Source of the DNA: Schmidtea polychroa | Taxonomy: Eukaryota | Direction: 5' to 3' | DNA: 64,000 nt | NCBI GenBank assembly: GCA_044892525.1 | Contig: CM097885.1 | Coordinates: 147,064,001 to 147,128,000 of the forward strand | In this document: positions 4,532-41,322 of the stretch, in pieces | Numbering within the stretch: position 1 is the stretch's first letter | Layout: the number at the start of each line of letters is the position of its first letter | Translations under genes and position numbers: made by a program | The notes under the pieces: model-generated | Databases searched by the model: none | Seen by the model: only the letters and a program-made list of their open reading frames with translations | Told to the model about the DNA's origin: nothing

Positions 4532-6266
4532 TCTTAGTATACATTGAAAATAAATGTAGGTTTGCTATAGTACTTCTAAATATTTATTTCAAAGATAATT
4601 CAGCTACTTATTATTTTTGAATTATGATGGTAATTTTAAAAACATTCTTGTTAGATGTAAGACACAAATTTAAATTACATTTAGTGCAAAACATTTTTGT
4701 TTAACCTGAATAATTGGGAAATTTTCATCTTCCAATGATGAGTTGAATCCAATCTTGTATCTCTAAGCGAAGCCAATGATGTGTTAGTGTCTCTCTTTTA
4801 TCTGAAATAAAGGTCATTAAAAATATATTTTTAAAAATTTTCAGCGATCTTTATTTTTCTAAAAATTGTCTAAAATAGAATTATTATAGAAATCTATCTC
4901 AGCGGTGCATTTCGATGAATCAAAAGTTTGTATGTGTTTTTTAGTATGTGTTGTGTTTGTGTGCAGTTTTTTATTTTTCTTCCACTTTTCAGATTTCTAT
5001 AGTACACCTAATTCCACATGTTAAAAGTCTCTATAATACATGTTGGTGTGTTCATCAGTTGATGACTCACCATTTATGAGAGAGTTTACATTTCATTTTT
5101 TCATTTTCAATTCAATTTTATTTATGGCTTTAAAAGTAAGTTTTTTAAATTTAAGTATATTTTAAGGCTTGAATTTTGATTTCATATAATTATGAGATCA
5201 TTATTCAAGCTCTTAAATATTACTTGTAATCAGCATTTATAATATATTGATAATTAAATTTCAGGTGCTTTTTTAGGTATTTTATGATATGTTATGAATT
5301 TGGAATTATTTCAATAAAATGTAAGTTATATATATTTTTAACTAAAAAGAAATAAAATAATCACCAAACACATTTATTTTTTTAAGAAATAATGGTTCCA
5401 ATCGATATTTTGGAGATTCCCAGTAATCTTCCAAAATCTTTATAATTTTCTCCATTTTCATATGCATTGATGAGACGGATTTTGTCATTTTCTGAAATTC
5501 TTTGAAAATATTATTTTTTTAAAATAAGTTATTAAAATTTACGATTTTAGAATTTTTTTCTTCAATTCCAAAGATGTCGATGTAACTTGTTGAATATCTT
5601 CACACAAAGGCGTTTGACTAGAAATATCTGATATGCTGTAAAATATTTTAATTATTTGTAATTAAATAAAAAAATTCTTACATTGTCAGATCTTCACCTT
5701 CGCAAAATGGAAATGTCTCCAAAGAAATATCTGAAAATCTAAAGAAATATTAACTTCAAAAATATTTTATAAATAGATCTTACGATGTTTTGTCGTCCAT
5801 TTCTCGAAAACTCAAAGTTGAGTTGTCAGATTCAAAATCCAAATTTTTTTCAGTCATGAATTTTAATAATTTTAAATTAATGATATGTTAACAGTATGTT
5901 AATGACTCTCTACTTTCGGAATAAAAAAAGCTATATTAAATTTGCGTGTATTTTATATTATGTGTGCTGTGTTTGTATGTAAAATTATTTTTCTGTCACT
6001 TTCTCAATTTCTATAATAAAACATTGAACATTCGGAACATTAAATTTTTGCACACAGGTAAGTTTGTGTGTTGCTATAATATAATTTTATCGATTTTTTT
6101 AGATTATAGAAACTTTTATATTCCGGATTTAGGTGTATAATATGTATAAGATGTATCTTAGTATACAATGAAAATAAATGTAGGTTTGCTATAGTACTTC
6201 TAAATATTTATTTCAAAGATAATTCAGCTACTTATTATTTTTTAATTATGATGGTAATTTTAAAAA
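4532..6266 (+). repeat. 111-bp direct repeat pair (4532-4642 and 6156-6266)
   Basis: TCTTAGTATAC...GATGGTAATTTTAAAAA occurs twice with only a few mismatches. Confidence 0.85.
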
Positions 6267-11586: not shown

Positions 11587-11672
11587 TTCTATCAGATTTG
11601 TCAGAAGTTGATGAATCACACAACGTAAATTGCTGAATTTGTTTTTAGAGATATTTTAGTGTTGGTGAAGTT

Positions 11673-12172
11673 AGTAGGGTATTGTGTGGACCCGGGAACA
11701 AAGACATATGACGTCATCGATGACGTCACAAAGACATATGACGTCATATCCCCGGGGAGGGTTTTTTTTTAATTTTTTTTTTAATTTTTTTTAAAATTTT
11801 TTTTTTAAATTTTTTTTTTAATTTTTTTTAAAAAAAAAATATATTACGTTGCGGTATTTTAAAATTTATATTACGTTGCGGTATTTTAAAATTTATTATA
11901 TTTTAATTATTAAATATATTACGTTGCGGTATTTTAAAAACTTATTTTGACGGTTAAGTTGACAAAATAAAATTATTATTACACACAATATAGTCTATCA
12001 GACAAGATTTTCTGTCACACACACAAGGTATAAAAAATATTATTAGTGTCCACACACGCAACAAGTTAGTGTTCTCATCGATAGCTATTGATATATTATT
12101 ATTATTAATCTATATACTCCGAGTCTATCCGACAAAATATTCTGTCCCCTTATGGGTACTGCTCACAAAGGT
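11673..12172 (+). repeat. Left terminal inverted repeat of the Polinton
   Basis: Reverse complement of ~19075-19512. Contains TGACGTCA x3 and ATATTACGTTGCGGTATTTTAAAA x3. Confidence 0.92.
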
Positions 12173-12260
12173 AAAGGTCACAAAGGTAAAGGTCGCAAAT
12201 GTACTGCTAAAAAATATTCAAGACAAAACTTTAACAAAGAAATTATACTTTAAATATACA

Positions 12261-12617
12261 CTAAAATTTATTAACACATTCACATTCATCATCTCCACAG
12301 TTCATAACATTTTCAACAACATGATCTATACAATCCCTATATACACACGGTTCAGTATCCGTAAATTCCTCCATAGGTTCATCAATTTCTTGAATGCTTT
12401 CCTCATCATCTTGAGCGTTTCCTTCATCTGTTTCATCAAATCCCGAATCTTCACTCTCTGCTACTTAGTCTATATTTAATGCGTTTGTAACAGATAATAT
12501 ATCCTCAATTTTCACACCAGATATTTCTGCTAATTTTTCCAATAAAAAGTTTATTATAAATTCTAAATATTAAATAATTAACTAATCATATTAACCTTTT
12601 TCTGCAGTCATTTTCAT
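12261..12617 (-). pseudogene. Small acidic Cys-tailed protein, probably spliced, with one premature stop
   Basis: ATG at 12617. A GT...AG intron at 12595-12563 (33 nt) restores a 108-codon frame: MKMTAEKEFIINFLLEKLAEISG...ESEDSGFDETDEGNAQDDEE...CGDDECECVNKF. In-frame TAA at 12465-12467. The intron is unusually short. Confidence 0.45.
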
Positions 12618-12744
12618 CACTTTAAAACTATATTATAAGTTTGTTTATAGATTTTCTTTGTTAAATTTGCATGTCATTTGCATTAATGTTGCAATTAATA
12701 AAGAGAAAAAACAAATATGACTAATACATTTATTAAATATAACA

Positions 12745-13155
12745 TTAAAATAGTTGTGAAAGTCTAGCAGACATAATTTTCCAAATAGGAGAATATACAT
12801 CATTATTATCAACTTTATATCCTTGGATTGCAATTGTTATATACCAATTTTCGTTTTCTTTGAAACCGATTTCATCAAAGGAATCATAAAATCTTGCATA
12901 TCTGTTGTTGAACCATGCATGTTGATTACAAGATAGATTTCGTTTGAAAACCCCATCAATAGATTTAATATCTATCATTGAAAGCGTGCCGGATAAGAAT
13001 TGAAATTTAGTTGGAATTAGCTTGATCGGTGACGCCAATTTCATATTGATTTCTTCTTTTAAAAAATAGATTTTATAGTTGTAGAACATTTGAACTGGTT
13101 GTACAAGTTCTGGAACAACTTTTGGCTTTTCAGTGCTTGAAATTTTCTTTGTCAT
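12745..13155 (-). CDS. Polinton hypothetical protein (136 aa), possible OB-fold ssDNA-binding protein
   Basis: Intact ATG ORF with a TATAAAAA box ~35 nt upstream. The C-terminal beta-rich segment YITIAIQGYKV...YSPIWKIMSA is reminiscent of viral SSBs (inference only). Confidence 0.7.
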   Translation of the reverse strand: MTKKISSTEKPKVVPELVQPVQMFYNYKIYFLKEEINMKLASPIKLIPTKFQFLSGTLSMIDIKSIDGVFKRNLSCNQHAWFNNRYARFYDSFDEIGFKENENWYITIAIQGYKVDNNDVYSPIWKIMSARLSQLF

Positions 13156-13414
13156 CGTGAATTATGATTAAAATGAAATGGTACAGGGTTTTTATACCTA
13201 TGACTATTGTTTATCAACCAATCAGATTGCTGTATGTCTTTGTTTAAATTGCATGTCATTTGCATTAATGTTGCATTAATGTTTTTTATTATAAATATTG
13301 TTTTTTATTATTATTTCTAATATTACTTATATTATTACTATTTCTATTACTATTATTATTATTTCTATTTCTATTATTTCGATTTACAAAAACAAAACAA
13401 TTCAACATAAAAAT

Positions 13415-13824
13415 TTATTTTGATACAATCTGACTCGAGTGGTGATTTCTCAGAGTCTTCACCAAACACCATTCAACATATTGTTGATAACGGAAATTGC
13501 AACAGCTACATCCGAAAATGCAAGGAGCCTCTGCTTTCATTTCTTTCATCACCCTTCCTATCTTGATATCCCATAGAAAGGTGTTTATTATATCGAATAT
13601 CCAGATTCGTGTTTGGTTGTAAATTAAATCTGGAATGATAGCTGGATCTCTATCTTGTAGAATCTCATTTAATTCTGGATAATAGAAGCATAATCTTTGC
13701 AGGATAATTGATTGATATTCATCTGTAAATAATATATATATTAATGTAATAATAAAAATTTAAAATTACCATAATGTTCATGCTCTTTCATTGAGGTGAT
13801 TGCGGAACTTTGTATGTTGTACAT
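13415..13824 (-). CDS. Spliced 120-aa Cys-motif protein (two exons: 13824-13770 and 13722-13415)
   Basis: A 47-nt GT...AG intron (13769-13723) joins MYNIQSSAITSMKEHEHY-D-EYQSIILQRLCFYYP...PCIFGCSCCNFRY...VSK*. A homologue with an intron at the same place lies at ~38225-38584. Missed by the ORF track. Confidence 0.8.
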
Positions 13825-13935
13825 TTTTGTTGAATAAATGACAACTAAACCGAAAACATTTTGTTATAAATAATCATCAGCCAATTAGATTTCGTCCAAT
13901 CAGATCAATTGCATTGAATTTGCAATGATAAATAA

Positions 13936-14400
13936 TTAATTAAGTGATAATAAAAAATCTAAAAATTCATTTCCTTCAATTATTGATTTAATTTCAGATA
14001 TGATATTATCAACTATACATTTGTAATCAATATTTTTTATTCCAAGAATTACTATCTTACCGCTAGCGAATATATTTACACACATAGGGTTATATTTTAT
14101 ATATCTCAAAGCTGGAAATAATTCTGGTTCGTAAAAGCATGGTATTAATTTAGCCAATTCATTTAAATTACAAGAAAAACCTATATCGGAAGTTAGAGTT
14201 ATCGATTGTATTTCTAAATCATAAACATTATATTCACTAGCTTTGATTATTTCCTTACACCCCATAATTCTACATTTACCAGTTTTGAAATATATTATTG
14301 GATATTTTTTACTTTTATTGATAAGTTGTTGTGGTTTCCCCATTGGAAATACCATTTTTGATACATCAGCTTTTGCCCTGTAATTTATATTTGAAAGCAT
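13936..14400 (-). CDS. TBP: TATA-box-binding-protein (TBP)-like protein, 154 aa
   Basis: YEPELFPAL and IFASGKIVILG match TBP repeat 2 (YEPELFPGL / IFxSGKxVxTG). IIYFKTGKCRIMGCK matches repeat 1, which is shortened. Confidence 0.9.
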   Translation of the reverse strand: MLSNINYRAKADVSKMVFPMGKPQQLINKSKKYPIIYFKTGKCRIMGCKEIIKASEYNVYDLEIQSITLTSDIGFSCNLNELAKLIPCFYEPELFPALRYIKYNPMCVNIFASGKIVILGIKNIDYKCIVDNIISEIKSIIEGNEFLDFLLSLN

Positions 14401-14503
14401 TTTAATGAAATAATTATAAAAACTCAGTTATATATAGTTATTTTAAAAGGAGTTCATTTAAATTATCAATATAAACAATAATTATATAGTTTAAATTTAA
14501 AAA

Positions 14504-15142
14504 ATGGAATTACGAAATGATGCAGTATACCAAATCGTTGGTCCAAGTGGTAGCGGAAAAACATTATTTGTTTGTAAATTACTAAAATCAAATTTGTTCA
14601 AAACAAAATTCAACAATATTTATTGGCATAGGGGCGCCGATGAAGAACATGGATTGACACAATCAAGTTTCTGTCAGTTGAAAAACATGAAAATAGTAAA
14701 GGGCTTTGATAAAAACTGGTCAAGTCGTTTGAAGAGAGATGATGTCATCATTATCGATGATTTGTATCAAGAAGCCAATAAAGAAAAGGATTTTAATAAT
14801 TTATTCACAAAAATCAGCAGACATGTTGGTGTTACAGTTATTTTCATAACACAAAATCTATTTCATCAAGGTGGTGCACATCGAACACGTAATTTAAATG
14901 TACAATATCTAGTTATTTTCAAGAATCCTAGAGATGCAACTGTCATTGATTTTCTTGGACGACAAGCATACCCTAATAACCGTAATTTTCTTATCAATGC
15001 ATTTCAAGATGCTACGAAAATACCTCATGGGTATATATTTCTCGATTTCACACAACAATGTCCTGATGATATACGGGTAAAAACAGAAATTTTCAACCCA
15101 AAAGGTGCCATGGTTTATAAACAAAGTTCAAAACAAATTTGA
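14504..15142 (+). CDS. A32/FtsK-like DNA packaging ATPase
   Basis: Walker A GPSGSGKT, Walker B IIIDD, plus SRH, FITQN and YLVIFKNPRD motifs typical of Polinton ATPases; intact 212 aa. Confidence 0.93.
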   Translation: MELRNDAVYQIVGPSGSGKTLFVCKLLKSNLFKTKFNNIYWHRGADEEHGLTQSSFCQLKNMKIVKGFDKNWSSRLKRDDVIIIDDLYQEANKEKDFNNLFTKISRHVGVTVIFITQNLFHQGGAHRTRNLNVQYLVIFKNPRDATVIDFLGRQAYPNNRNFLINAFQDATKIPHGYIFLDFTQQCPDDIRVKTEIFNPKGAMVYKQSSKQI

Positions 15143-15155
15143 AAACACATAAATA

Positions 15156-15650
15156 ATGTTTTCAAAAACAAGGATATCGAGTAAAAAACAACCAAAAGTT
15201 CCACCAACAACTAGTTATACTCCATCTAAAGAACTTATTACAGAAAACTTTCCTGCAATGAATCTTATTTCGAAAAATCCTAAACCTAAACCTAAAAGTA
15301 AAACCACTAAGAAAGTAAAAGTTGTTAAAAATCATCGGAGTTTCCCGTTTTTCAATAAATTGTTAAAGGCACCAAGTATGAAAAGAAACAGTATTTTGCA
15401 ATCTTTTCCAAATTATGTTGTCGATGATTTACTCGATATTATACTTAAAGTAGTCAAAGGCAAGATCAAAATCAGTAAATCTAAAAAGCAATTATTGAGT
15501 AAACATAGGAAACCTTTGCTATCATTAGTAAATAATAAAAATCGTCAACAAATGAGAAAAATTATATATAAACAACAAGGGGGATTTATCGGTGCATTGA
15601 TACCTTTAGCAATATCATTATTAGGTGGAATAATAGGAAGTCGATCATAA
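15156..15650 (+). CDS. Basic, core-like virion protein with an adenovirus pX-like hydrophobic tail
   Basis: K/R-rich 164-aa ORF ending KQQGG-FIGALIPLAISLLGGIIGSRS (GG cleavage-like site followed by an amphipathic segment). Confidence 0.7.
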   Translation: MFSKTRISSKKQPKVPPTTSYTPSKELITENFPAMNLISKNPKPKPKSKTTKKVKVVKNHRSFPFFNKLLKAPSMKRNSILQSFPNYVVDDLLDIILKVVKGKIKISKSKKQLLSKHRKPLLSLVNNKNRQQMRKIIYKQQGGFIGALIPLAISLLGGIIGSRS

Positions 15651-15653
15651 ACA

Positions 15654-15881
15654 ATGGGTGCTAATCCTTCATTACCAGACATTAAATTTAATATTAAATC
15701 TTCTTGTTGTAATGGAGAAGATTTGGACGAACCCCGAAGACGAAGCCGGTTTTGGTGGAGTGGAAAAATTAAGGAAAAGAGTTCCGAATTCGAAAAAGGA
15801 AACCCAGAAGTGGTTATCAGACCAGCTTGCGTACAGTTTGAACCAACCAATGCAGAAACGATTCCCAACAAGAGTATATAA
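15654..15881 (+). CDS. Small putative myristoylated protein overlapping the integrase 5' end
   Basis: ATG 4 nt after the upstream stop; MGANPS fits MGxxxS; SSCC motif; overlaps integrase in another frame from 15712. Confidence 0.5.
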   Translation: MGANPSLPDIKFNIKSSCCNGEDLDEPRRRSRFWWSGKIKEKSSEFEKGNPEVVIRPACVQFEPTNAETIPNKSI

Positions 15882-16290
15882 AACACATGGAATAAATGAT
15901 TTATGGCAAATGGATTTGATGGAGATGATACCCTATTCGAAAATTAACAATGGGTATAAATATATTTTAACATGTATTGATGTATTCAGTCGGTTTGCCC
16001 GAGCAATACCCGTCAAGGCAAAATCTGCAGATGAAATGTCTAAAGCTGTTAATGATTTATTTAAAGATGGACATCCTAATAACTTGNNNNNNNNNNNNNN
16101 NNNNNNNNNNNNNNNNNNNNNNNNNNNNNNNNNNNNNNNNNNNNNNNNNNNNNNNNNNNNNNNNNNNNNNNNNNNNNNNNNNNNNNNNNNNNNNNNNNNN
16201 NNNNNNNNNNNNNNNNNNNNNNNNNNNNNNNNNAACAGTAAAGTCAAGCAAATCCTCAATAAATTGAAAATAAACCATTATCGGAAATGT
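15712..16290 (+). pseudogene. Retroviral-type (rve) integrase, 3'-truncated
   Basis: MEKIWTNPEDEAGFGGVEKL N-terminus, WQMDL (first catalytic Asp), YILTCIDVFSRFARAIP. The second Asp falls in an N gap. The frame breaks after KINHY, before the catalytic Glu region. Confidence 0.88.
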
Positions 16291-16489
16291 CAATCAAAGC
16301 CTTTTCGTTATAAGTAAGAACATTTATATTATAACCTGGATTTTGTTGTTCAAATTTACTTATATTTGATAGTTTCATCGGCATATCATTAGGATCAAAT
16401 TTAATTTCAGAAAGATTGTATGAATTAGGGCGATTTCTATATTGCCTATTTATACTATCATATTTAATAATTGACAAGAAACTATACAA
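16280..16489 (-). pseudogene. Inverted fragment of the Polinton PolB N-terminal region
   Basis: DMPMKLSNISKFEQQNPGYNINVLTY resembles the FPxKLxDIxKFEKxN...INV segment found N-terminal in Polinton polymerases, but lies antisense to the polymerase body. Confidence 0.6.
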
Positions 16490-16539
16490 AAAACAGAAGT
16501 GGTCATTATTAACTACATTAATGAGACAGCTTAAGTTTC

Positions 16540-18383
16540 TTAAAGATTCTTTTTGCTAAGATTGACTCATTAACTGTTAAATTTATAGACTCTTATCAAT
16601 TTGTCAGCGAGTCTTTAAATAATGCTGTCAAAACTTTATCATCTTTACCCTTGACCGAATCAGAATTTCAGGGTACCATAATAACTGCAAAGGGGATTTT
16701 TCCTTATGATGCCGCAACTTCATTAGAGGTTTTACATAACACTCGTCAGTTACCTCCTATTTGGAAAGATGTGACTCCCGCTGAATATGAGACAGCTCAG
16801 CGAATTTGGGTTGAAACTTCATGTACTTCACTTTTCGATTACATGATGGTTTATTTAAAACTTGATGTTTTCCTTTTAGCCGATTTTTTCCAGCAATTTA
16901 GAGCTAAGTCCATTGCTCATAACCGACTAGAGCCATTAAATTTCTTAGGGATTCCAGGTATGTCTTGGAATTCAGCCTTATTAACTTTAAACTCTCCAAT
17001 TGAGTTCCTCACCGATATGGAGATGTATAACTTTTTCGAGGGCGGTATCCGTGGCGGACTAACTTTTGTAAATAAACATTATGTAAAAACAGACCCGAAT
17101 ACCGCTTTGCTTTACATAGATATAAATAATTTATACGGTTGGGCTTTAAGTCAACCATTACCTTGCAGTGACTTTGAATGGGTTACTGATGATAATTTAT
17201 TAAATAATATAATTGTTGAATGCACAACGGTAGATTTAGATCTGCTTGATTATGGTTATACCATATAAGTGGATTTAGAAATACCGATGTCAATTCACGA
17301 CAAACTGGACGATCTTCCCGTTGCCGCTGAAAAGATGTGTGTACCGGGTTCGAAAATAGAGAAGCTGTTGCTTACACACAGCCCCAAGAGGAACTATGTT
17401 CTTCATTGGAGGCTTCTACAAATATTTATTAAATTAGGTGTTAAAATATCAAAAACACATAGAGCAATTAAATTTAAACAAGATAAAATTTTCAAAAATT
17501 ATATTAATTATTAAACAACAGTCTTTACGGCAAGACTGTTGAAAATCTTAAAAAACGTATTAATTTACGTCTGTGTAATTCTTCACAGAGATTATTAACA
17601 TTCTGTTCGAAACCGACTTTTCGTAAATCCACGAAAATCGATGATGACTTGATTTCGGTTTTATTGAGGAAGGACATAGTGTGTTTGAATAGACCTAGTT
17701 ACATTGGTCAAACCGTACTTGATTTATCCAAACTCAGGATGTACCAGCTGCAGTATGAAGAGTTGCAAAAATATCGCGACGAATTCAACTGCGAAATTAA
17801 TATCGTTGCTGGAGACACAGATTCCTTCTTCTTGGAAATTAAACATTGTAGACTTGACATTCTTTTACCTGCGATGATTAGATATCAATTATTAGATACT
17901 TCGAATTATGACCCAAATCATCCTTTATATAGTAGGAACTTTGATTCTGTCATTGGTAAATTCAAAGACGAGAATAAAGGGTTATTATATAAAGATTGGG
18001 TGTTCTTGAGACCTAAATGTTACAGTTTGATGGGTGTTGAGGAAAGTATGAAGGCTAAGGGGATAAGTATGAAAGATACTGGACTAACACATCAGTCGTA
18101 TCTAGATTGTTATTTAAATGATAAAATATACACAGTCCCTCAGTTTAGAATAACGTCAAAAAATCACCAACTTTTTAGTATTAAAAATAATAAAAGAGCC
18201 TTGACATGTAGAGATGATAAGCGAAATTGGGTGGATAAAAATCAAAGTTTGGCATATGGCCATTATAGGGGCGGTGACACCGATATATTTATAGATTCAA
18301 CGGAAGCTATCTCAGCAGATGATACAGATGATTTCCATGATCCAGCAGATGATAATTATTTTGGACATGATTATTTTCGATGA
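16540..18383 (+). pseudogene. Protein-primed family B DNA polymerase (pPolB), fragmented by stops/frameshifts
   Basis: FIDSYQF, KGIFPYD, YLKLDVFLLAD, GIRGG, YIDINNLYG, DTDS, GKFKDE, LRPKCYS, KAKGI and DDKR motifs in order across ORFs 16651-17268, 17269-17514 and 17649-18383. Confidence 0.93.
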
Positions 18384-18833
18384 TGTGTTTAAATTATTTA
18401 ATAAATGTATTAGTCATATTGTCTTGAATATTTTTTAACAGTAACTTTGTGAACAATTTTTATACATTGTGTGTAATAATAATATGTTAAAGTTTCGTTA
18501 GTTACCTTTATGACCTTTACCCAGTGTGTTAATAAATTTTAGTGTATATTTAAAGTATAATTTCTTTGTTAACATTAACAAAGAAATTATACTTTAAATA
18601 TACACTAAAATTTATTAACACACTGGGTAAAGGTCATAAAGGTAACTAACGAAACTTTAACATATTATTATTACACACAATGTATAAAAATTGTTCACAA
18701 AGTTACTGTTAAAAAATATTCAAGACAATATGACTAATACATTTATTAAATAATTTAAACACATCATCGAAAATAATCATGTCCAAAATAATTATCATCT
18801 GCTGGATCATGGAAATCATCTGTATCATCTGCT
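18314..18833. repeat. 520-bp perfect palindrome (259-bp arms, 2-nt spacer at 18573-18574)
   Basis: AGCAGATGATACAG... is mirrored exactly by ...CTGTATCATCTGCT; lies next to an N gap. Confidence 0.9.
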
Positions 18834-19074
18834 TGAATATTTGTGACCTTTACCTTTGTGACCTTTACNNNNNNNNNNNNNNNNNNNNNNNNNNNNNNNN
18901 NNNNNNNNNNNNNNNNNNNNNNNNNNNNNNNNNNNNNNNNNNNNNNNNNNNNNNNNNNNNNNNNNNNNNNNNNNNNNNNNNNNNNNNNNNNNNNNNNNNN
19001 NNNNNNNNNNNNNNNNNNTTACATTGTTTAATAATATCATTGTACCCTTGCGAGTTGTTGAGCGTGACCAGTAC

Positions 19075-19512
19075 CCTTGTGAGCAGTACCCATAAGGGGA
19101 CAGAATATTTTGTCGGATAGAGTCGGAGTATATAGATTAATAATAATAATATATCAATAGCTATCGATGAGAACACTAACTTGTTGCGTGTGTGGACACT
19201 AATAATATTTTTTATATCTTGTGTGTGTGACAGAATATCTTGTCTGATAGACTATATTGTGTGTAATAATAATTTTGTCAACTTAACCGTCAAAATAAGT
19301 TTTTAAAATACCGCAACGTAATATAGTTAATAATTAAAATGTAATAAATTTTAAAATACCGCAACGTAATATAAATTTTAAAATACCGCAACGTAATATA
19401 TTTTTAAAAAAATTAAAAAAACCCTCCCCCGGGGGGTATGGCGTCATATGTCTTTGTGACGTCATCGATGACGTCATATGTCTTTGTTCCCGGGTCCACA
19501 CAATACCCTACT
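19075..19512 (-). repeat. Right terminal inverted repeat of the Polinton
   Basis: Reverse complement of the left TIR with shorter poly-T/A tracts; followed by TSD GAAGTT. Confidence 0.92.
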
Positions 19513-21249
19513 GAAGTTTTATATTTCTAAGGGGAAACGTAGAGAATAATCGATATTCGTTGAATTACCGTTTTTTTTATTAAAATCAGATTGACGAGCC
19601 ATTAATTTGATTTGAATATATTATCATGTAAGATTTATTTACTTAATCTGACAGTAATTTGGGATGATTTATCGGTAGTATCCATTGAGTTTGATGCCAT
19701 TTATACAGTATAGTTCGTTTTGATGTTATAATTAAATTTTTGACAATTAATGGAACTAATTTCAGCAAAGCTATTTAGTCCGTGATTTTACAAACAAGAT
19801 TTTCAATTTATAAATATAATGAAGGTGTAGCGTCAACAAAATTAATTTCGATTATCGGAATAATAGGGTCAAGCGTAATTTATTAAAATTTTAAACATGA
19901 TAATAATTTGTAGATAAACTAAAATTACGATAAATGGGAGCTTTAATGAAATTGTTAAGCCTGTTTAACTGATTAATTTAAAACATTTGGTCGATGATGA
20001 TATGCAATGTTTTCGTCTAAGTTAGGGAACAAATGATGCTCATTTGCAAGTCAAAAATATTTGTGTATTTCTTTTGTGTATGATAAAAATTTAAATGGAT
20101 TATTTAGATCTGATTCTCTTAAAATTCTTATATTTTCCGTTGAGCATTAAACGACAGCAGGAACTGTAAAGTAAATCGAAATGTTGGCATATTATAGTTC
20201 ACAAGAGTCAGCTCTCATTTTACTAACATTCGCCCATTCGACACATTACCAACGTTGTTCATCCAACTGGTGTCTATCGGTATGGAGCCATTGTATTCTA
20301 GGTTACACTGGAAACAGGCCAACGGGGCATAATTTTAGTTACTTGTAACCAACCAAAGCTAACTTATTACTTGGAAAATAATAATATTTCAATAAGTTAA
20401 TTAAAGTGTTTTTATTGTGAAATATCAATTTTTGAACTTTTGGAACGTAAAATTCAATTCAGACGGTACTTCATGTCATCTATTTGTTGCACTTGTTCAA
20501 AGGTTGACAAAATATTCACTTGAAACAGTTATTACTCACCACAAACAATATTTAGACAAATAAATAAAAAGTACGGTTAAAATTTTTAAATTTTCATAAC
20601 GTTCAATTTGTTACAAAACATTAATGAATTTTAATCTATGAGAAAAATTATTATTTGTTTCGATTCATTTCTCTCGGGAAATTTGTTTTTCATAATAAAA
20701 AATGTTTTACTGAAAATTTAAAATTTTCATTTATTACGATGTTCATTTTGTTTCCAGCACTCACTAATGTCACGTTATCCCTATAATTTTCATTTCTCTC
20801 TCAAATAATTGCTAATAATAATGGTCAACAGCGCGATTAAGTTCTCGTACGATGTTTCCTAGAATAATTAAAAATTTTTTATTGGAATAAGAAATGATTT
20901 AATATTTTGATAGATGTCATTGATTTAGCAGAAAAAAAGCGGGTTTGAATAATTTTTGTATTTATCAAATTGAAAAAAACAAAATAAATTTAATGAAAAA
21001 TTTGGAGATATAAAATTCGTNNNNNNNNNNNNNNNNNNNNNNNNNNNNNNNNNNNNNNNNNNNNNNNNNNNNNNNNNNNNNNNNNNNNNNNNNNNNNNNN
21101 NNNNNNNNNNNNNNNNNNNNNNNNNNNNNNNNNNNNNNNNNNNNNNNNNNNNNNNNNNNNNNNNNNNNNNNNNNNNNNNNNNNNNNNNNNNNNNNNNNNN
21201 NNNNNNNNNNNNNNNNNNNNNNNNNNNNNNNNNNNNNNNNNNNCAAGTC

Positions 21250-24876: not shown

Positions 24877-25560
24877 TCAAATTTCCTCCTTCTTTGTTCT
24901 TCTTGTTCTTCCTTTACCTGATTTTCTTTCGACCCGTACCATTTTTCCCTGCAAGTCTTTTTTTTCAAAAACTATCTCTGCCGGGCTTTTTCCTGTCGTT
25001 TTTTGTTTGGTTGCATTTAATGTAAATGCGACTTCTGGTAGTATCTCGGCCCAATCCGTCTTATTTCTATCTCGTAAAGTAGTATTTATCAGTTCTCGTA
25101 TTGTCCTGAATTGCCTTTCTATCTGTCCATTTGTTTGGTGATGGTATGGACTCAAAAGCCATAACTTAATGTCAAGTTTCTTTGTGAATTCTCTCATCAT
25201 TCCTGATTCAAACGCTTTCCCACAATCAACTCTTATCTCCTTTGGGCATCCAAATATTAAAATCCATTTTTCTAAAATCGTTTTCTTTATTGATTCCTCG
25301 TCTTGTCTTGACATAGCTGTCAAGACTTGATACTTACTATACTGGTCTATTATACCCAATTTATACTTTTTACGTCCTCTTGTTTCTTGCATTGGTCCAC
25401 ATATATCCACGATATATCCTGTTTTTTTACTGGTTCCTTCGTTATAATTGTTATAGCCTTGGTGTTTTGAGAAGTCTCCTGAATCTGACTCTACAGTTTT
25501 TTTCCAATATATCTATCTTGCATATAATCAGCTATCTTCTTGACTCTAGCATAACACAAT
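24877..25560 (-). pseudogene. Gypsy integrase
   Basis: DICGP, IIDQYSKY, RVDCGKAFES, SPYHHQTNGQIERQFRT (DDE core). Confidence 0.85.
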
Positions 25561-25734
25561 AGTCTATGTATTTCCTTTATGGTTTCTTGTATCTCGTTTT
25601 CTGGTATCATCGTTTTCTTTCGTAATTCTTCTTCCAAATTTATTTGTTGATTGTTGCTTCTACTTTCTTCTCTAGTAATCTAGTTTTTATCTTTCCTTTC
25701 TTAGCTTCTTCGTGAGCCATTTGGAAATATGGAA

Positions 25735-26640
25735 GGAGCCACCTGGTGATGCAGCAATTCCAAACGGCATTCTATTGAAACAGTATTGCCCTTTCTTTGT
25801 TGAGAAGGCTGTTTTCTCTTGCTCTTCTTCGTCTAACCGCATTTGGTAATATGCATTACCAAGATCGATTGAGTTAAATAAATGGAACATCCTAACAAAT
25901 CTAACATCTCGTCTATGTTTGGCATTGGGAATGCCTGCCTCTCTGTTACTGCATTCAGCTGTCTGAAATCCAAGCATAGCCTAATCTTTGTTCTCTTTTT
26001 TCTATACGCAGAATAACGGCGTGTTTCATGGGAAGTTGCATTTCCGTATAATTCCATTTTCGTATAAATTTTGTATTGCTTCTTCAATTTTTGTTTCCAA
26101 ATTCAACGGTTGACGATATGGTTTTAGGGGTATTGGTTAATCTCTTGTAATTATCTTATGTTTTACTAAATGCGTTCGACCCACATCCCTTTTATCTGCC
26201 ATAAACACGTTTCCACTGTTCGTTATTATTTCCTTTAATTTACTATTCTCGTTAATCTTTAGATGTTCCAACGCTCGCGTCAATCGTTCTTCATCCTTTA
26301 TTTGTCTGCCGAATTTTGCTTCAATGTTACAAATATAGTTCTTGTCTTTTTCACTATATTCGATATCTTTCTTTTTTGCCAGTCTATATCCAAATGATTC
26401 TTGTAATTCTACTCCTCCAATCACCTCTGGTGTCACTTTCTCCGCCACAATGAATCTAACTTCCTTGGAAATATCTCCGATAGTTACTTTAACCTTTGTC
26501 TCTATCGTACTTTCGTTTGCACATCATAACTTATCGTCGTTTCTCATCAATTGTTGTCCTCGTAACTAGTTAAAACAGTTAACACTCATTACATTTATTC
26601 GTGCTCCGGTATCTAATAAACAGTCGAAAATTTCCCCATT
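25735..26640 (-). pseudogene. Gypsy protease and truncated reverse transcriptase
   Basis: FDCLLDTGARINVMS near 26590-26635; LCLDFRQLNAVT, AFPMPNIDEML, IDLGNAYYQ, FCFNRMPFGIA-like segment, then an abrupt junction at ~25735. Confidence 0.8.
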
Positions 26641-26896
26641 CATCATTACTGTTACACTAGTTCTTCCCTGTAGGTTGTTATACACAATTTCTACCTCCTG
26701 CCCCGTTTCAATTGTTCCAATTCTTTCCACTTTTCTCTCCTTAGGAACCTGTATACTTTCTCACTTAACCTTCCTACATTCTCCCACTTTTCTACCCCTT
26801 GAGGATATCCCATCCACTTTCCTGTTAGTATATGGCTCCAACCAACTCCTCTACTGGTGGAGCCCTGTTGTTTAGGTACGTCCTAATAAATTATCT

Positions 26897-27828
26897 TCAT
26901 TTGTCTCTACGCACGATTCCATTAATCCGTCTGTATCTGTTTCCTGTTGGTCTTTGTTTCTCTATCGTTTTCTTGTAACTCGACTTTGTATAACATTCTT
27001 CAGATCTCTGACCATTTTTGTTGCATCTTTTACACCGTATTTCTTGACATAACCATCTTATATAACCTTTCTCACAACCAAAACATCTTGGCACTTCTTT
27101 ATCTGGACAATTATTACTTATATATCCCCTTCTGCACTCTATCTTACTTTTTACTGGACAGTCTATTTTCGTGTGGCCTATTTTGTGCCTTATCCAGCAC
27201 TCTAGTTTTTCTCGTTACCTGCCTTATTCTTTTCATCTTTCTGCGTGTACTGTCATCTTCTTTGTGGATCCTAATAGACCACTCTTGAATTACTTTTCAT
27301 AGCGTTTATCTGATCTCTCTGTTTGCCCACTTTATCCATCAGAATTAATGTTTCCTTTATCTCCTCTGTGCTTTTTATCTTCCGCAATATTACGTCTTTC
27401 TCAACTTCTTTATTCTCAGCACATACTATCAACATCTTTGCTATTATTTTCTCTTTGGTGAATTCTTTATTCTCAACCAACCTGTCGACAAGCTCCTCCA
27501 CTTTTTTAAAATATGTTTCAATCTCTTCGCCTCTTCTTTTACAATTCAATAAACTTTCCATATCCTTTATTACGTCTCTTTCGTAATCAAATGCCATTCG
27601 TAAACTGGCTTGAAATCCTTCTCCTTTTTTAACTGTCTTTGCATATTTCTCCAATAGATCCTCGTCGATCATATATGCAGTCAATCTTTCCTGTTCTTTT
27701 TTATTGATGCCTTTAGCATCGAAATAAATCTCGCATCTTCTAATGAATTTTTCCAAGTCATCACCTTGACAAAGCACCCTTGGCAACAATCTTTCATTAA
27801 TCGCGTCGGTGTTTACCGCTGCCACCAT
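26897..27828 (-). pseudogene. Gypsy gag with degenerate zinc knuckles
   Basis: ATG at 27828-27826 in frame with ORF 27271-27870; CFGCEKGYIRWLC and CKRCNKNGQRSEEC in 26897-27094. Confidence 0.75.
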
Positions 27829-30148
27829 ATTAGGATTCTCATCCGTTACAACATTAATATCTGGTTCCAAATCACTAAATAATTAAAGAAATTTTATTCA
27901 AGAAATTTTACACTCAACAACTTGTTTTTTCTTATTTTTGTTATTTAAACAAATTTCGATTTTTTTTTAATATTTTTCGATAAAATTATTTTTTAAATTT
28001 AACAAAGTTTCTAATTAAATCTTTAAGAATCTTTCAACTTCCTCGTCATCATTATTTTTGGTGATCGTTAGCTGTATGCTCACTGCAAACTATGTGGTAT
28101 TTTCCATTTATTAATATTATAATTATGGCTAATCACGCTTTAACACAGATGTTTAGCAAACATCTATATGTTACTTTTTCAATAAATTGGAAATTTTCAG
28201 TAATTTCAGTAATTTTCAGTAATTTCATATATTTGTGTAGACCATTCGGTAATATTATTGTTGAACAAAAAATGTGGGTTGTGATCAAAATGGGAAACAC
28301 CAAGTAAACATCATAAAAGAGATATTATAACGCCAAAAATAGAAAAGACGAAAGTAAAGTAAATTAATAACAAAAGCAAGAATATATAGAACAAAACAAA
28401 CAAACATAACACATGTTAGATGACAGTCGCAGGCCGATTAGCACATTTGTCCTAACAAGCAATTATGGGACTGGGCAGAATAAATTTAGAGTAAATGTGT
28501 ACAGTGAGAATCAATAAAAGCCAGTTGAATTATCAAAAAAATCATACAATCCAATTGAGAGCCAAAAAAATTAACCAAATCCCATCAATAATCTATGTGA
28601 CTTAATTATCCTTGGTGACTTAATTCAATTCTATTTTATTATGACAATTTAATTTTATTTGTCTGTGTCGAAAATGTATTATTGTATTCATATGGTGGTA
28701 GTGTGACAATTCAATTTCAGTCAATTGGTGATCAAATGTGACTTAATTATTTTTATTTATCTTATAGATTTATATTTTATGGTGTAAATAATGGTTAATC
28801 TTTTAATTTTATATATTGTAAATAATTGAGTTTTTATAATTTAGAGACGGAAATTACTTTAATCAAAAATTTGTTAAAATAACAAAATAAATTTTTAAAA
28901 TACAAAAAAAACAAAACAAATATGGAGAAATTCTTTTAAGAAAACACATGGAGGAATTGAAAAATAAATAAAGAGTTCCTTTCAAAACAAATAAAAGGCT
29001 TTTAATATTGAATCTATAACTTTTAAATAAATAATTTTAAAAGCAAAAATAAAAACAAATAAATTTAATTTGGTATAAATAGGGCCAGTAAATTCAGTTC
29101 AATCACCCCAAAAAATTAAGTCGTAAGCAGACTAGTAAATTTTGGAAGGAAATCCTTTGAAAACTTTTAAATTAGGACAGTACAAAATATAAAAGAATTT
29201 TAGTTGATACACAATAAATTTTTTTTGCATAAATAATAAAACAAGCACATACTGTCAAACAACACAAAAATACACACACGCATCTATCTGATAAATTAAA
29301 GTCATTCAACAATAAAAGCTTTTCATTTAAGGTGAATATTATTTTATTTAAATAAACATTTATAACCGGNNNNNNNNNNNNNNNNNNNNNNNNNNNNNNN
29401 NNNNNNNNNNNNNNNNNNNNNNNNNNNNNNNNNNNNNNNNNNNNNNNNNNNNNNNNNNNNNNNNNNNNNNNNNNNNNNNNNNNNNNNNNNNNNNNNNNNN
29501 NNNNNNNNNNNNNNNNNNNNNNNATCTCAAATAGTGAGACCTCAACACACAAATAACATATAGAAAGTAAACAAAGTCATATTAATGGCAATAAAAGAAA
29601 CGAGGAACTGGAAATGAAAAGATTTCCACAAAAACACTAGAATATTCTATAAAAATGGTGAATTCAAATCTGGTGCTGACATGAGCAACAACTAAATATA
29701 ACAATAAAATTTAGAAAATTAAATCATAAAAAAATAATAAAAAAAACTTGAATATTAAAAGAAAGAGGAATGATAAAATAAAACTATTAGAAATAGCATA
29801 AAATATTCTCAAAAATGGCCATATCCATCAAGGTAGCGAATTTAATTAAAATTAAATAAAATATTAAAATTAGAAAATGAGATAAATCATAAATAATAAA
29901 AGCTCGCCATCAAAATTGATAAAAATTGAGATAAAAATTAAATATAGTTAAAATAATTCGAATTTTTTTTTATTGTATCAGTGCACACACACAAAAATTA
30001 TGATATATAAGTAGACGCATTTCCGTTTTAAATCAGTAATTTTGGGGCGATCAAATTTTATTTAATTGATCTATAGTACAGTCAGACTATATATATATAT
30101 ATATATATAATATAAAATTAGACTAATTTTTGGTAATAAGAAACTAAG

Positions 30149-38224: not shown

Positions 38225-38584
38225 TGAGATTTCACGAGGGCCCATTTCACGATTCGTTGTTAACGATTCGCGCAGCAACTGCACCTGATGATGCATGGGT
38301 ATTTTGTTTCGAGTTCCTTCGTGCTCCTATTTATTTTCACGTCCCATAGGAACTGGCTTACAATATTGTAAATCCAGATTCTGGTTCTATTGTTGACCAG
38401 GTCGGGAATCATTGTTTCTGGCCGATCTCTCATTAGGTCAGTCATGTCGGGATAATAAAAATGCAAACTCTCCACAGTAACTGCAACATATTCGTCTGAA
38501 AATAAAATATTAAAAATGAAAATAATAAATTTAAATTTACCAGTGTTCGATCTCGTTTCCGATAGGAGTAGTTATGTTATACAT
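38225..38584 (-). pseudogene. Homologue of the spliced 120-aa Cys-motif gene
   Basis: MYNI... exon, GT-AG intron 38540-38497, then DEYVAVTVESLHFYYPDM...IPDLVNNRTRIWIYNIVSQFLWDVKI...PCIIRCSCC. Exon 1 is one base out of phase. Confidence 0.8.
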
Positions 38585-38639: not shown

Positions 38640-39066
38640 GATATTGGCAAATAGATAGATTTCATTTTGAATGCTAGTAACAAATCCTTATACTTCAAAT
38701 TTATCAATCCTAGCAACTCTATTTTCCACTAGCAAACACGTTAACACACATGAGATTATATTTTTAAAGTCTCAAAGCACAAAATAATTCTGGTTCGAAC
38801 ATATAATTGCACTTTCTTGACATGTTGTATTAATTGATATCCACATCCATAGTTACCACAATTGATTGGATTTTAATATTATTTATTTGATATTGTAACT
38901 TATTAACATCCAAAGATTTCTTACATCCCATTATTCTGCATTTACTGGGTTTGAAAAATATTATCGGGTGTTTTGCGCTTCTATCAACAATTCGCTGTGG
39001 TTTTCCATTTAGGAACTTCATTTTAGATACATCAAAATTTCCATTATAATCTATATTTGATAACAT
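38640..39066 (-). pseudogene. TBP: TBP-like pseudogene
   Basis: MLSNIDYNGNFDVSKMKFLNGKPQ...KCRIMGCK (31/49 identical to the first copy by manual count); FEPELFCAL and VNVFASGK in a shifted frame. Confidence 0.85.
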
Positions 39067-39168
39067 TATTAAATTAATTATGAAAAATTAATCTTTATAC
39101 AAAATCTTTAGAAAGAGTTCATTAAAATCTTTATTATAAACAAAAAACTATATTTATTAAACGTAATA

Positions 39169-39625
39169 ATGGAATCAAGAAATGATGCGGTATACTAAAT
39201 CGTTGGCCCAAGCGGTAGCGGAAAAGGTTTGTTTGTTTGTAAGGTATTACATTCTCAATTATCCAAATCAAAATTGAACAAGATTTATTAGGATCAGGTG
39301 CAAATGAAGAATATGGATTGACTTAAGATAATTTCTGTAAGTTGAAAAATATGAAAATAGTAAAGGGGTTGGATAAAAACTGGTCAAGTCGGTTAAAGAA
39401 AGACGATGCCATCATTATCGATAACTTATATCAAGAAGCTAATAAAGAAAAGATTTTTAATAATTTATTTGCTAAAATCAGTAGACAACTTTATCATAAC
39501 TTATCATACACGTGTTGGTGTTATTTTGATTTTTATAACTCAAAATCTATTTTATTTGGGTGTCACACTTCGGACACTTAATTTAAATGTTCATTATTTA
39601 ATTGTTTCAAAAATCCTGGAGATGC
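39169..39625 (+). pseudogene. Packaging ATPase pseudogene
   Basis: MESRNDAVY*IVGPSGSGK; KNWSSRLKKDDAIIIDNLYQEANKEK; FITQNLF; 3'-deleted. Confidence 0.88.
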
Positions 39626-40249
39626 AACCAATTTTGTATATTGATCGGCCATCAACCCAGGAGGTAATTGAATGTTGGGCATTTTAAGAGAGTCTAAATA
39701 ATATTGAGTTTTAAATTAACGGTTTGCGAACTGAATATTTGGATTTGAACGATCTTTATTAACTGTTCAAGTCAATGTAATAGATAAAGATAAAGAATTT
39801 TTGGGTGATAAAAATGCTGCGATAACAAATTATTTCTTGTTTCATACACTTTAAAAAGATGCAGTTCTTTTATTTCATAATATCAAGATTGAAGGTGGAA
39901 ACAATAAATACATTCACACAGCATTAAAAGAAACTATGGTAAATTATAATTCCGATATTAAAAATTCATTTTTTATTCTTATGGGCTATGCGGCAGCAGA
40001 TGATGAAATGAAAAAGTGAATTAAAGACTCAAAGGTTTTCACCGTGTTCATTATTATAACTCAAATTTATGGATCAACCGAAATATTTACTTATTAAAGT
40101 TAATGTACACATCAGGTTGAAAATATTTGATTCTGAATTATCACTAACTAGTTCTGCTGGTCAACAAATATGCCAAGTAGTTGATGAAAAATTACCAGTA
40201 AGAAGAGTTCGTGTAGATCCCTCAGTATTCGCTGGTAATCAAATAGATC

Positions 40250-40423
40250 CAGTGCTCGAAGTGAGGCGGGATAGCCGGGATATTATCCCGGCATTGATTA
40301 TGTAGGCGGAATTGCATCCCGGCACTTCATTTCATATAATCTATAGGTTTATCCCGGTACTTATTTCATTTTATAGGCACACAAATACTGCAATTAAGGT
40401 CACACATAGTACATCCATTAATG

Positions 40424-40474
<51 letters not shown>

Positions 40475-41077
40475 TTTATTCTCTATTCTCTATTCAATTA
40501 AGAATTTCCCAAGCAGCAGTAATGGATAGGTAGGTATATTCTCTTATTTATTTTAGTTAAACCAGCAAGTTGTTTGTTGAGTTATTTATACTGCGACCCC
40601 CTCTATATATAATGTGTGCATGATTTCACATGCAGAGAGTTGTTATAATTAACGTGATAAGAAAACATATATGTGCTACGCAGATATACATACACATGCA
40701 CCTATTGACAATCACAATATGTAAGAGATAGGACCGCTTCAATGCCTTTATCGTACTTCTTATCCACTGTATATAGTATGAGTTTTGATGTATTAAAGGT
40801 GTGTGTGTGAAAGTGTAGGCATGAGTTTCTTGTCACGGGCACTGCGTAGCTTACACAAAATTGTTTGACACCCCCCCCACATTAAAACAGGTACACCCCC
40901 TGAAACTTATGATTAAATGGGTAGACACCTCCCCCCACCCCCCAAAAAAAAATTTGTTGGACACCCCCCCCCAAAGTTTTGCAACACCCCAACTGAAAAT
41001 TTCTGCATAAAAGCCTGGAATCCCGGGCGCCACAGCATGCCTATCCCGGCACATATTTTGTTCCACTTCGAGCACTA
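40250..41077. mobile_element. hAT-type MITE
   Basis: TIRs CAGTGCTCGAAGTG / CACTTCGAGCACTA; exact 8-bp TSD AATAGATC; internal (TA)n. Confidence 0.9.
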
Positions 41078-41322
41078 AATAGATCTTAATTATAAGAATT
41101 CTATTTATTCACTGAAGACAAAGGACATTGTATAATTTAGAATTCCCAAAGGTTCCTCTTCATTCTATAAGGATTCCTAACTTTATTCTGATAACATTTT
41201 AATCTGACATTCAATATAATAGATCGTGCACTACTTAAAGTTCAATATTCAAAAACTGATGTAACATCTTTAACTTTATCGAAAAATGACTGATTACATA
41301 TCAATAAATTATTATATAGACT

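Follow-up and report, generated by a model that had tools for sequence, protein, structure and literature searches.

The 64,000-nucleotide stretch of Schmidtea polychroa DNA analysed here (contig CM097885.1, positions 147,064,001 to 147,128,000 of the forward strand; hereafter the window) carries at 11673–19512 a Polinton/adintovirus-like element of 7,840 bp, bounded by terminal inverted repeats (TIRs) and target-site duplications (TSDs). Within it lies a gene for a small relative of the TATA-binding protein (TBP), which we call mini-TBP. A first reading of the letters alone (the sequence-only reading) had proposed that an intact TBP-like open reading frame (ORF) of 154 amino acids (aa) sits inside such a bounded element, head-to-head with a packaging ATPase gene, and this description was confirmed. 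The principal features of the element are the following.

11667–11672: left TSD, GAAGTT, the same 6-mer standing immediately outside both termini
11673–12181: left TIR, 90–99% complementary to the right TIR
13936–14400, minus strand: mini-TBP gene, 154 aa, intact, recognized by Pfam, PDB sequence search, AlphaFold2 (AF2), Foldseek and hhalign
14504–15142, plus strand: packaging ATPase gene of the Pox_A32/FtsK-HerA type, 212 aa, intact (Pfam Pox_A32, 2.7e-07)
15658–16317, plus strand: integrase (rve) gene through which an N-run passes (Pfam rve, 3.5e-07 for the stretch ahead of it)
16304–18383, plus strand: remnant of a protein-primed PolB gene, broken (Pfam DNA_pol_B_2, 1.3e-12; tblastn with the PolB of relatives)
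19064–19512: right TIR, inverted-repeat match to the left TIR
19513–19518: right TSD, GAAGTT, direct repeat of the left 6-mer

The TIRs are about 450–510 nt long with the first 17 bases alike at both termini, and the agreement of TIRs and TSDs at the element ends is far beyond chance. The mini-TBP ORF begins with ATG, has no internal stop and contains all three peptides quoted in the sequence-only reading; since the ATPase gene starts 103 nt away on the opposite strand, the two genes form a head-to-head pair. TIRs and a 6-bp TSD are what is expected of a Polinton/Maverick, as are a protein-primed PolB and an rve integrase, the former broken and the latter crossed by an N-run in this copy. From the Polinton morphogenesis set the ATPase is intact here, and a Peptidase_C5 gene (3.5e-09) and a gene resembling that of a major capsid protein (MCP-like) are found only in relatives. 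The TIRs also hold three TGACGTCA palindromes (CRE/ATF-like) near the tip at 11700–11750 and repeated units of about 25 nt with ACGTTGCGG between AT-rich words at 11840–11900, both mirrored within 19300–19480; these may be replication, packaging or enhancer signals.

Profile and structure comparisons both bore out the TBP fold. Pfam PF00352 (TBP) matches residues 62–125 as a single stretch with an E-value of 8e-15 and 54.9 bits, against a cut-off of 22.9. All 35 matches in a PDB sequence search are TBPs, the best being that of Methanococcus jannaschii (2z8u, 5.9e-17), and query residues 61–140 match both repeats of each of them, repeat 2 better than repeat 1. As to an archaeal-like or a eukaryotic origin, archaeal and microsporidian TBPs head the list by PDB E-value, with no clear gap behind them. 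With an alignment of 23 canonical two-repeat TBPs, hhalign returned a probability of 99.8% (E 2e-29), placing query residues 26–138 on TBP positions 41–176. Repeat 2 is aligned throughout, the GK...G.K strand stretch corresponds to the last strands of repeat 1, and the gap falls exactly at helix 2 of repeat 1.

The AF2 model used here was built with a family alignment of 68 sequences (pLDDT 96.0, pTM 0.84); a single-sequence model (pLDDT 31) was unusable. Its first half has strands at residues 2–10, 25–28, 35–38 and 42–48 and is free of helices across residues 1–59, and its second half is a full repeat (strand 60–72, helix 79–85, strands 88–90, 97–100, 107–111 and 115–121, helix 127–153). The top 44 Foldseek matches in the PDB are all TBPs (E 1.6e-9 to 1.7e-6, TMq 0.59–0.72), the next match having an E-value of 0.015. 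Two complete TBP repeats, each with its strands and two helices, are not present: the helical layer of repeat 1 is gone and its sheet is apparently complete. Because the profile, AF2 and Foldseek results together show the sheet kept and the first-half helices lost, the protein is best described as a true TBP homologue of one and a half repeats. Compared with canonical TBP (PF00352; PDB 2z8u, 1mp9, 1vol) the fold is the same, repeat 2 aligns end to end, and both the four DNA-kinking Phe positions and the stirrup stretch recur. However, the canonical core comprises about 180 aa whereas mini-TBP has 154, lacks both helix 1 and helix 2 of repeat 1 and is encoded by a virus-like mobile element. The stretch E-P-E-L-F-P, which we take to be the C-terminal stirrup of TBP repeat 2, is the same in the long two-repeat TBP matches, and the short archaeal-type matches mostly have Q in place of the stirrup L. 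In canonical TBP the C-terminal stirrup is where TFIIB makes contact, and TFIIA and negative regulators dock on the helices of repeat 1.

Mini-TBPs of about 145–165 aa form a distinct family within the TBP fold. Of 5.8 billion proteins searched, 76 proved to be relatives; almost every one is 144–170 aa long and has a precomputed TBP domain. ENA, Logan, JGI or MGnify assemblies are the source of them all, with NCBI and UniRef contributing none. An exhaustive search of representatives gave 1148 matches at E<=1e-3 and 104 at E<=1e-10; family members match the query over its full length in one stretch, whereas canonical TBPs match its second half in two stretches.

The 68 aligned sequences are 37–58% identical to the window protein and share 16 invariant columns (N6, Y7, P23, F38, R44, M46, G47, E91, E93, F95, P105, C107, N109, F111, K115 and G120). 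At the DNA-kinking positions Phe is present in 68 of 68 sequences at F38, F95 and F111 and in 60 of 68 at F18, where five more have Tyr; the equivalence with the canonical residues was taken from hhalign for F38, F95 and F111 and from position in the model only for F18. The stirrup is similarly constrained (E91, E93 and F95 in 68/68, P92 in 67/68, L94 in 65/68), and R44, M46, S66 and N109 are invariant yet non-canonical residues of the strands. Cysteines at residues 43, 48 and 107, found in 66, 61 and 68 of the 68 sequences, are absent from the canonical TBP consensus; these near-invariant residues could form a disulfide or a metal site, or could serve core packing in place of the lost helices. 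Values of dN/dS between lineages range from 0.13 to 0.45 where computable, with dS saturated so that they are barely usable. In the same lineages the ATPases are 60–76% identical and the TBPs only 40–55%, the TBP evolving much faster outside its invariant positions.

The linkage of such TBPs to Polinton genes, implied by the sequence-only reading, proved to be general. Mini-TBP lies next to Polinton genes in all seven distinct contig contexts obtained from ENA and JGI samples, adjoining genes for a Pox_A32-type ATPase, an rve integrase (in some cases with a chromodomain), an MCP-like protein of about 410 aa and adenain (Peptidase_C5), as well as a PF03175-type PolB and Bcl-2 and RING proteins. 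Two gene arrangements occur, with the TBP gene either near the ATPase gene or after the protease gene. Among 80 JGI loci retrieved with the mini-TBP family alignment, 14 of the 16 with at least 5 kb contain at least one hallmark gene, and all five with at least 12 kb contain ATPase, integrase, PolB and the MCP-like gene. The reverse test gave the same picture: three of three long contigs picked via the ATPase alone have a TBP gene upstream of it, one of them broken. A decayed second copy in the window itself, described below, again pairs the two genes.

Pfam recognized neither the MCP-like proteins of about 410 aa nor proteins of about 326–345 aa, and since it found nothing the designation MCP-like rests on size and position. 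There is no RNA polymerase gene among the identified genes of related elements, in which many called genes have no Pfam match. Scans of IMG/VR (2.9 million viral contigs) with the TBP and ATPase alignments returned relatives of neither gene. The gene set proposed for Adintoviridae (PMC8502044), namely adenain, a PF03175-type PolB, an integrase and Bcl-2 and IAP/RING accessories, is found in relatives of the window element, an assignment that rests on relatives with ATPases 60–76% identical to that of the window and on gene content, not virion proteins. Purifying selection and linkage at the level of the family show that mini-TBP has a function in the element lineage, a statement that concerns the family and not the window copy. 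Judged by gene content across these loci, the mini-TBP gene is thus shown to be a conserved component of an adintovirus-like Polinton clade with no RNA polymerase gene among those identified.

Accessory genes for Bcl-2, RING (zf-C3HC4_3) and TRAF-MATH proteins stand beside TBP in relatives and look like an 'early' block devoid of the ATAAACA box described below; the TRAF-MATH genes are those next to TBP in loci L097 and L099. Their positions in the related loci are as follows.

L005: 8091–8576 and 10662–11075
L015: 448–900
L097: 7923–8912
L099: 854–1858 and 5476–6447

A comparison of upstream regions revealed an 8-mer, TATAAACA, with the core ATAAACA, about 35 nt before the ATPase ATG and common to six lineages. 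With no prior choice of word, TATAAACA is also the top 8-mer in the −70 to −1 regions of 113 called genes from eight lineages, occurring in 33 regions where 2.7 are expected, and the 8-mers ranked after it all overlap it. Whole loci contain 58 copies against 10.6 expected (sd 3.2), and exact copies in the seven related loci number 54, of which 50 lie on the gene-array strand. Among the 57 copies within 120 nt of a start, 31 are placed 32–42 nt upstream of the ATG, frequently within the coding sequence of the gene before; after the fixed TATAAAC an A follows in 26 of 31 cases and a further A in 21 of 31, and the 5′ flank is unconserved. The signal was replicated in 36 independent JGI loci (115 copies against 23.6 expected, Poisson P ~2e-41), where 43 of 93 copies lie 30–39 nt before the first ATG of an ORF. 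Even the most distant TBP subgroup retains ATAAACA as its top upstream 7-mer, with 32 occurrences against 2.8 expected and a peak at 35–49 nt. A literature search for the 8-mer TATAAACA returned unrelated primer sequences only.

The boxes of the two elements in the window, and the TATA-like box of its TBP gene, are located as follows.

14428–14436, minus strand: TATA-like box of the mini-TBP gene, 34–36 nt before its ATG, with an initiator-like TCAT nearer the ATG
14470–14477, plus strand: TATAAACA box, 34 nt before the ATPase ATG
15116–15123, plus strand: TATAAACA box inside the 3′ end of the ATPase gene, 40 nt before the next ORF
39135–39142, plus strand: TATAAACA box, 34 nt before the decayed ATPase gene of the second copy

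Over the whole window TATAAACA occurs 13 times against 10.3 expected, which is not significant; the signal is confined to the elements. Its distribution among gene classes is uneven. The box stands upstream of 19 of 32 ATPase genes and 8 of 16 MCP-like genes, and small neighbouring genes also carry it about 35 nt before their ATG; it precedes only 1 of 8 adenain genes and 1 of 12 genes for a virion-module protein of about 330–380 aa ('p345'). It was found upstream of none of 18 integrase, 7 PolB, 3 Bcl-2 and RING, or 41 plus 8 TBP genes. The TBP genes have a signature of another kind, TCATAA about 8 nt before the ATG in 21 of 50 (2.1 expected) and AGTATA about 41 nt before it in 15 of 50 (1.5 expected), which is ordinary TATA-plus-initiator geometry. 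Two promoter classes thus split the morphogenesis-type genes from TBP and the genes for replication and integration.

These observations suggest a model in which a viral TBP, made early, directs host RNA polymerase II (Pol II) to the promoters of morphogenesis genes, and we give it an even chance of being correct. Mini-TBP would be produced early from a host-type promoter, and the ATAAACA-type box would then be bound by its β-sheet saddle, with the four conserved Phe residues kinking the DNA. Given the known orientation of TBP on DNA, the canonical second repeat would lie over the 5′ half of the box, leaving the unusual 3′ half to be read by the remodelled N-terminal half, with its invariant N6, Y7, R44 and M46. 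Mini-TBP could next nucleate initiation by host Pol II, probably via TFIIB, which would dock on the conserved C-terminal stirrup. The repeat-1 helices, used by host regulators and TFIIA in canonical TBP, are absent from it. The outcome would be a virus-specific switch for morphogenesis genes. A broader proposal, which we advance tentatively and rate somewhat below an even chance, is that small (~15–25 kb) polymerase-less integrating viruses of invertebrates may use two-stage transcription, with a TBP of about 150 aa, expressed from a TATA/Inr promoter of host type and of shifted specificity (ATAAACA core), serving morphogenesis genes that each have their own mini-promoter, and may in this way have escaped the host regulators for which the lost helices are the docking site.

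An analogous arrangement is known from beta- and gammaherpesviruses, which are nuclear and polymerase-less and use a TBP-fold late factor together with a variant TATA-type box for their late genes (PMC4893493). The likeness to the herpesvirus vTBP (BcRF1/ORF24/UL87) is one of mechanism only and does not imply membership. Models of the herpesvirus proteins U58, ORF75 and BcRF1 are weak structural matches to mini-TBP (E 3.6e-3 to 1.5e-2); those matched have 440–1005 residues and no sequence similarity to it, whereas the 154-aa mini-TBP scores as a TBP by sequence. According to PMC7498053, vTBP acts with five other viral proteins, and a large multidomain protein with a central TBP-like domain and five partners in a viral pre-initiation complex (vPIC) is a description that the 154-aa mini-TBP does not fit. 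The TBP-like proteins of Nucleocytoviricota in BFVD (Heterosigma akashiwo virus, Terrestrivirus and an asfarvirus B263R homologue) are closer in structure, with Foldseek E-values of 1e-7 to 1e-4 to mini-TBP. However, they are of about 190–500 aa and at most 22% identical to mini-TBP, and their viruses encode their own RNA polymerase.

Several points weigh against a mini-TBP-directed switch. The exact TATAAACA word is missing within 70 nt of about 40–50% of the ATPase and MCP-like genes, and in the distant subgroup the first base before ATAAACA is T or C. The box still resembles an ordinary TATA box, possibly readable by host TBP, and its invariant ATAAACA core resembles a forkhead-type site. 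Since the box lies 35 nt before the ATG, leaders would be very short if initiation occurs about 30 nt downstream. The interfaces invoked for TFIIB, TFIIA and the regulators are those of canonical TBPs. Finally, the box survey was made within the mini-TBP-bearing elements, with TBP-less Polinton clades outside its range.

A rival explanation is a role in shut-off, in which mini-TBP occupies host TATA boxes or titrates TFIIB and so damps host transcription while host TBP reads the ATAAACA boxes. Since the helices of repeat 1 are missing, such a protein would support no normal TFIID/TFIIA-dependent initiation, and the loss of both helices with retention of the DNA-kinking Phe residues and the C-terminal stirrup is what a decoy might look like; the box itself contains an ordinary-looking TATA-type word. 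However, a decoy leaves unexplained the uniformity of the box, its restriction to morphogenesis-type genes and its absence at TBP, integrase and PolB. The invariant non-canonical R44 and M46, in first-half strands on the DNA side, suggest that mini-TBP has an altered specificity, not a generic one. We consider a decoy unlikely, and the promoter-motif data favour redirection of Pol II over it.

A host factor, forkhead-type or host TBP, might instead read the box, leaving mini-TBP to bend DNA at other sites, such as the TIRs, during replication, integration or packaging. The ATAAACA core is similar to a forkhead-type core, the TIRs hold AT-rich repeat units and TGACGTCA palindromes as possible targets, and the mini-TBP gene often adjoins that of the packaging ATPase, although in another subgroup it sits after the protease gene, away from the ATPase. 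The sense orientation of 50 of 54 copies in seven loci and the fixed distance to the ATG are traits of a core promoter and not of an enhancer site. In addition, the family has genuine transcription TBPs as its closest relatives and retains the stirrup stretch; we regard this explanation as rather improbable.

The redirection of Pol II proposed above concerns the family, and the state of the copy in the window has to be considered separately. Its remaining features are listed here.

12745–13155, minus strand: ORF X, 136 aa, related to a TBP-neighbour gene in loci L001 and L002 (tblastn E 9e-16 to 6e-18), with no Pfam match
13490–13702, minus strand: ORF Y remnant, 3′ of the TBP gene, present in both window copies
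15156–15650, plus strand: 164-aa ORF with a hydrophobic C-terminal tail, related to a small gene 3′ of the ATPase gene in relatives (tblastn E 2e-25 to 2e-29)
18314–18833: perfect palindrome of 259 nt with a 2-nt spacer, 100% complementary, made of the 3′ end of PolB and its inverted copy

As assembled, the element has neither capsid nor protease genes and includes two N-runs. Its PolB remnant has lost the N-terminal part and retains about 650 of at least 1150 codons; one or more in-frame stops and two or more frame changes disrupt what is left. The element is thus defective, although this is true only of the assembly as it stands, and for this reason the window copy of mini-TBP is probably inert. 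The palindrome at 18314–18833 directly precedes the N-run 18869–19018 and PolB is oriented opposite to that of relatives, so the assembly of the element may be unreliable; the palindrome is probably an assembly artefact, a fold-back or an orientation error. ORF Y is small and Cys-rich and is 49% identical over 71 aa to 38263–38475 (minus strand) of the second copy; no homologue was present in any related locus fetched, and a short GT..AG intron may exist before it. A contig of the ENA assembly ERZ2272329 (L016), from a different sample, is 93–98% identical to window 12889–14726, which covers the ATPase start, TBP and ORF X, and lacks the 668-bp segment 13256–13923 and hence ORF Y. Its TBP is called as only 109 aa and is probably damaged upstream.

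It could be argued that the mini-TBP ORF of the window is an accidental survivor in a dead element, of no use to element or host. The missing capsid and protease genes and the broken PolB agree with this, and an intact ORF of 465 nt needs no selection in a young insertion, as indicated by TIRs 90–99% alike and by the 98% identity of L016 over the TBP–ATPase segment. However, the N-runs and the palindrome make the apparent deletion uncertain, and the argument applies to the window copy only, whereas the family shows purifying selection and linkage; as an account of the finding it is quite improbable. Least of all do we expect the box to be a late promoter belonging to some larger DNA virus that co-infects the host and whose machinery transcribes the element in cooperation with mini-TBP. 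In favour of this, a short uniform word upstream of most small genes is a pattern of virophages and polinton-like viruses, and the best viral structural matches are TBPs of large DNA viruses. Against it, none of the 2.9 million viral contigs of IMG/VR yielded a relative of TBP or ATPase; the elements, inserted with TSDs into a genome of animal type, bring accessory genes for Bcl-2, RING and TRAF-MATH proteins; and elements of this kind have no known helper virus.

An older fragment of a related element lies at about 38.7–41.3 kb of the window and contains remnants of the TBP, ATPase and MCP-like genes.

38722–39066, minus strand: decayed mini-TBP gene, 50% identical, with two stops and the 3′ part gone
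39169–39636, plus strand: decayed ATPase gene, head-to-head with the TBP remnant, with at least one frameshift and the 3′ part gone
39619–41250, plus strand: decayed MCP-like gene, in several pieces and two frames

The window further contains an LTR retrotransposon with gag-like, RT and rve pieces, two ORFs that make up a hAT transposase (DUF4371 and hAT dimerisation domain), a 668-aa ORF whose matches to the aspartyl-protease families DUF1758 and Asp_protease_2 are weak and fall below threshold, and a short extra PolB-like fragment near 23 kb. The positions of these other mobile elements are given jointly.

24880–27882, minus strand; 49675–52199, minus strand; 60507–62510, plus strand; ~23 kb

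A match to the Rfam mir-753 precursor was found at 5158–5219 on the plus strand (81.2 bits against a gathering score of 62). The window has a GC content of 27–30% and seven N-runs. The mir-753 family is associated with planarians, and taken with this GC content the match would suggest a flatworm host. The genes of the window follow the standard genetic code; an alternative code was rejected, the ciliate code merely inflating ORFs everywhere.

Placed beside Polintons/Mavericks and Adintoviridae with a PF03175-type PolB, the window element shares the TIRs, the 6-bp TSD, the protein-primed PolB, the rve integrase and the Pox_A32-type ATPase. Adenain, the MCP-like gene and the Bcl-2 and RING accessories are seen in relatives only, the window copy being without a morphogenesis module as assembled. 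TBP is not included among the described hallmark genes of these groups. However, the novelty suggested by the sequence-only reading stands only in part. A 'TBP' gene label, with TRAF also listed, already appears in the legend to Fig. 5 of the MELD-virus maps of Starrett et al. 2021 (PMC8502044), so that a TBP-like gene in such elements is on record and novelty is reduced, not removed. Those maps put the label on adintovirus-like elements without the truncated architecture, the size of the family or linkage statistics, and the word 'promoter' is absent from the main text of that paper. A literature search on Polinton, Maverick or adintovirus together with TBP or TATA found only that study and its preprint. 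New are the analyses of the protein and of the promoters, covering the mini-TBP family and its truncated build, the generality of its linkage and the split into two promoter classes; the existence of the TBP-like gene was known.

In the mini-TBP element clade the box also offers annotators a practical guide to genes and their starts. Polintons and adintoviruses have been thought to depend wholly on host transcription, and we know of nothing on the ordering of their gene expression. An element-encoded TBP together with a box limited to packaging and capsid-type genes provides a concrete and testable model of an early/late switch. As a natural 'minimal TBP' that consists of a saddle and a C-terminal stirrup and has no helical layer on repeat 1, mini-TBP is informative on the surfaces that initiation needs. 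If the model is true, mini-TBP would rank as the smallest core-promoter factor known to be encoded by a virus; it would have converged on the herpesvirus vTBP while remaining a true TBP homologue.

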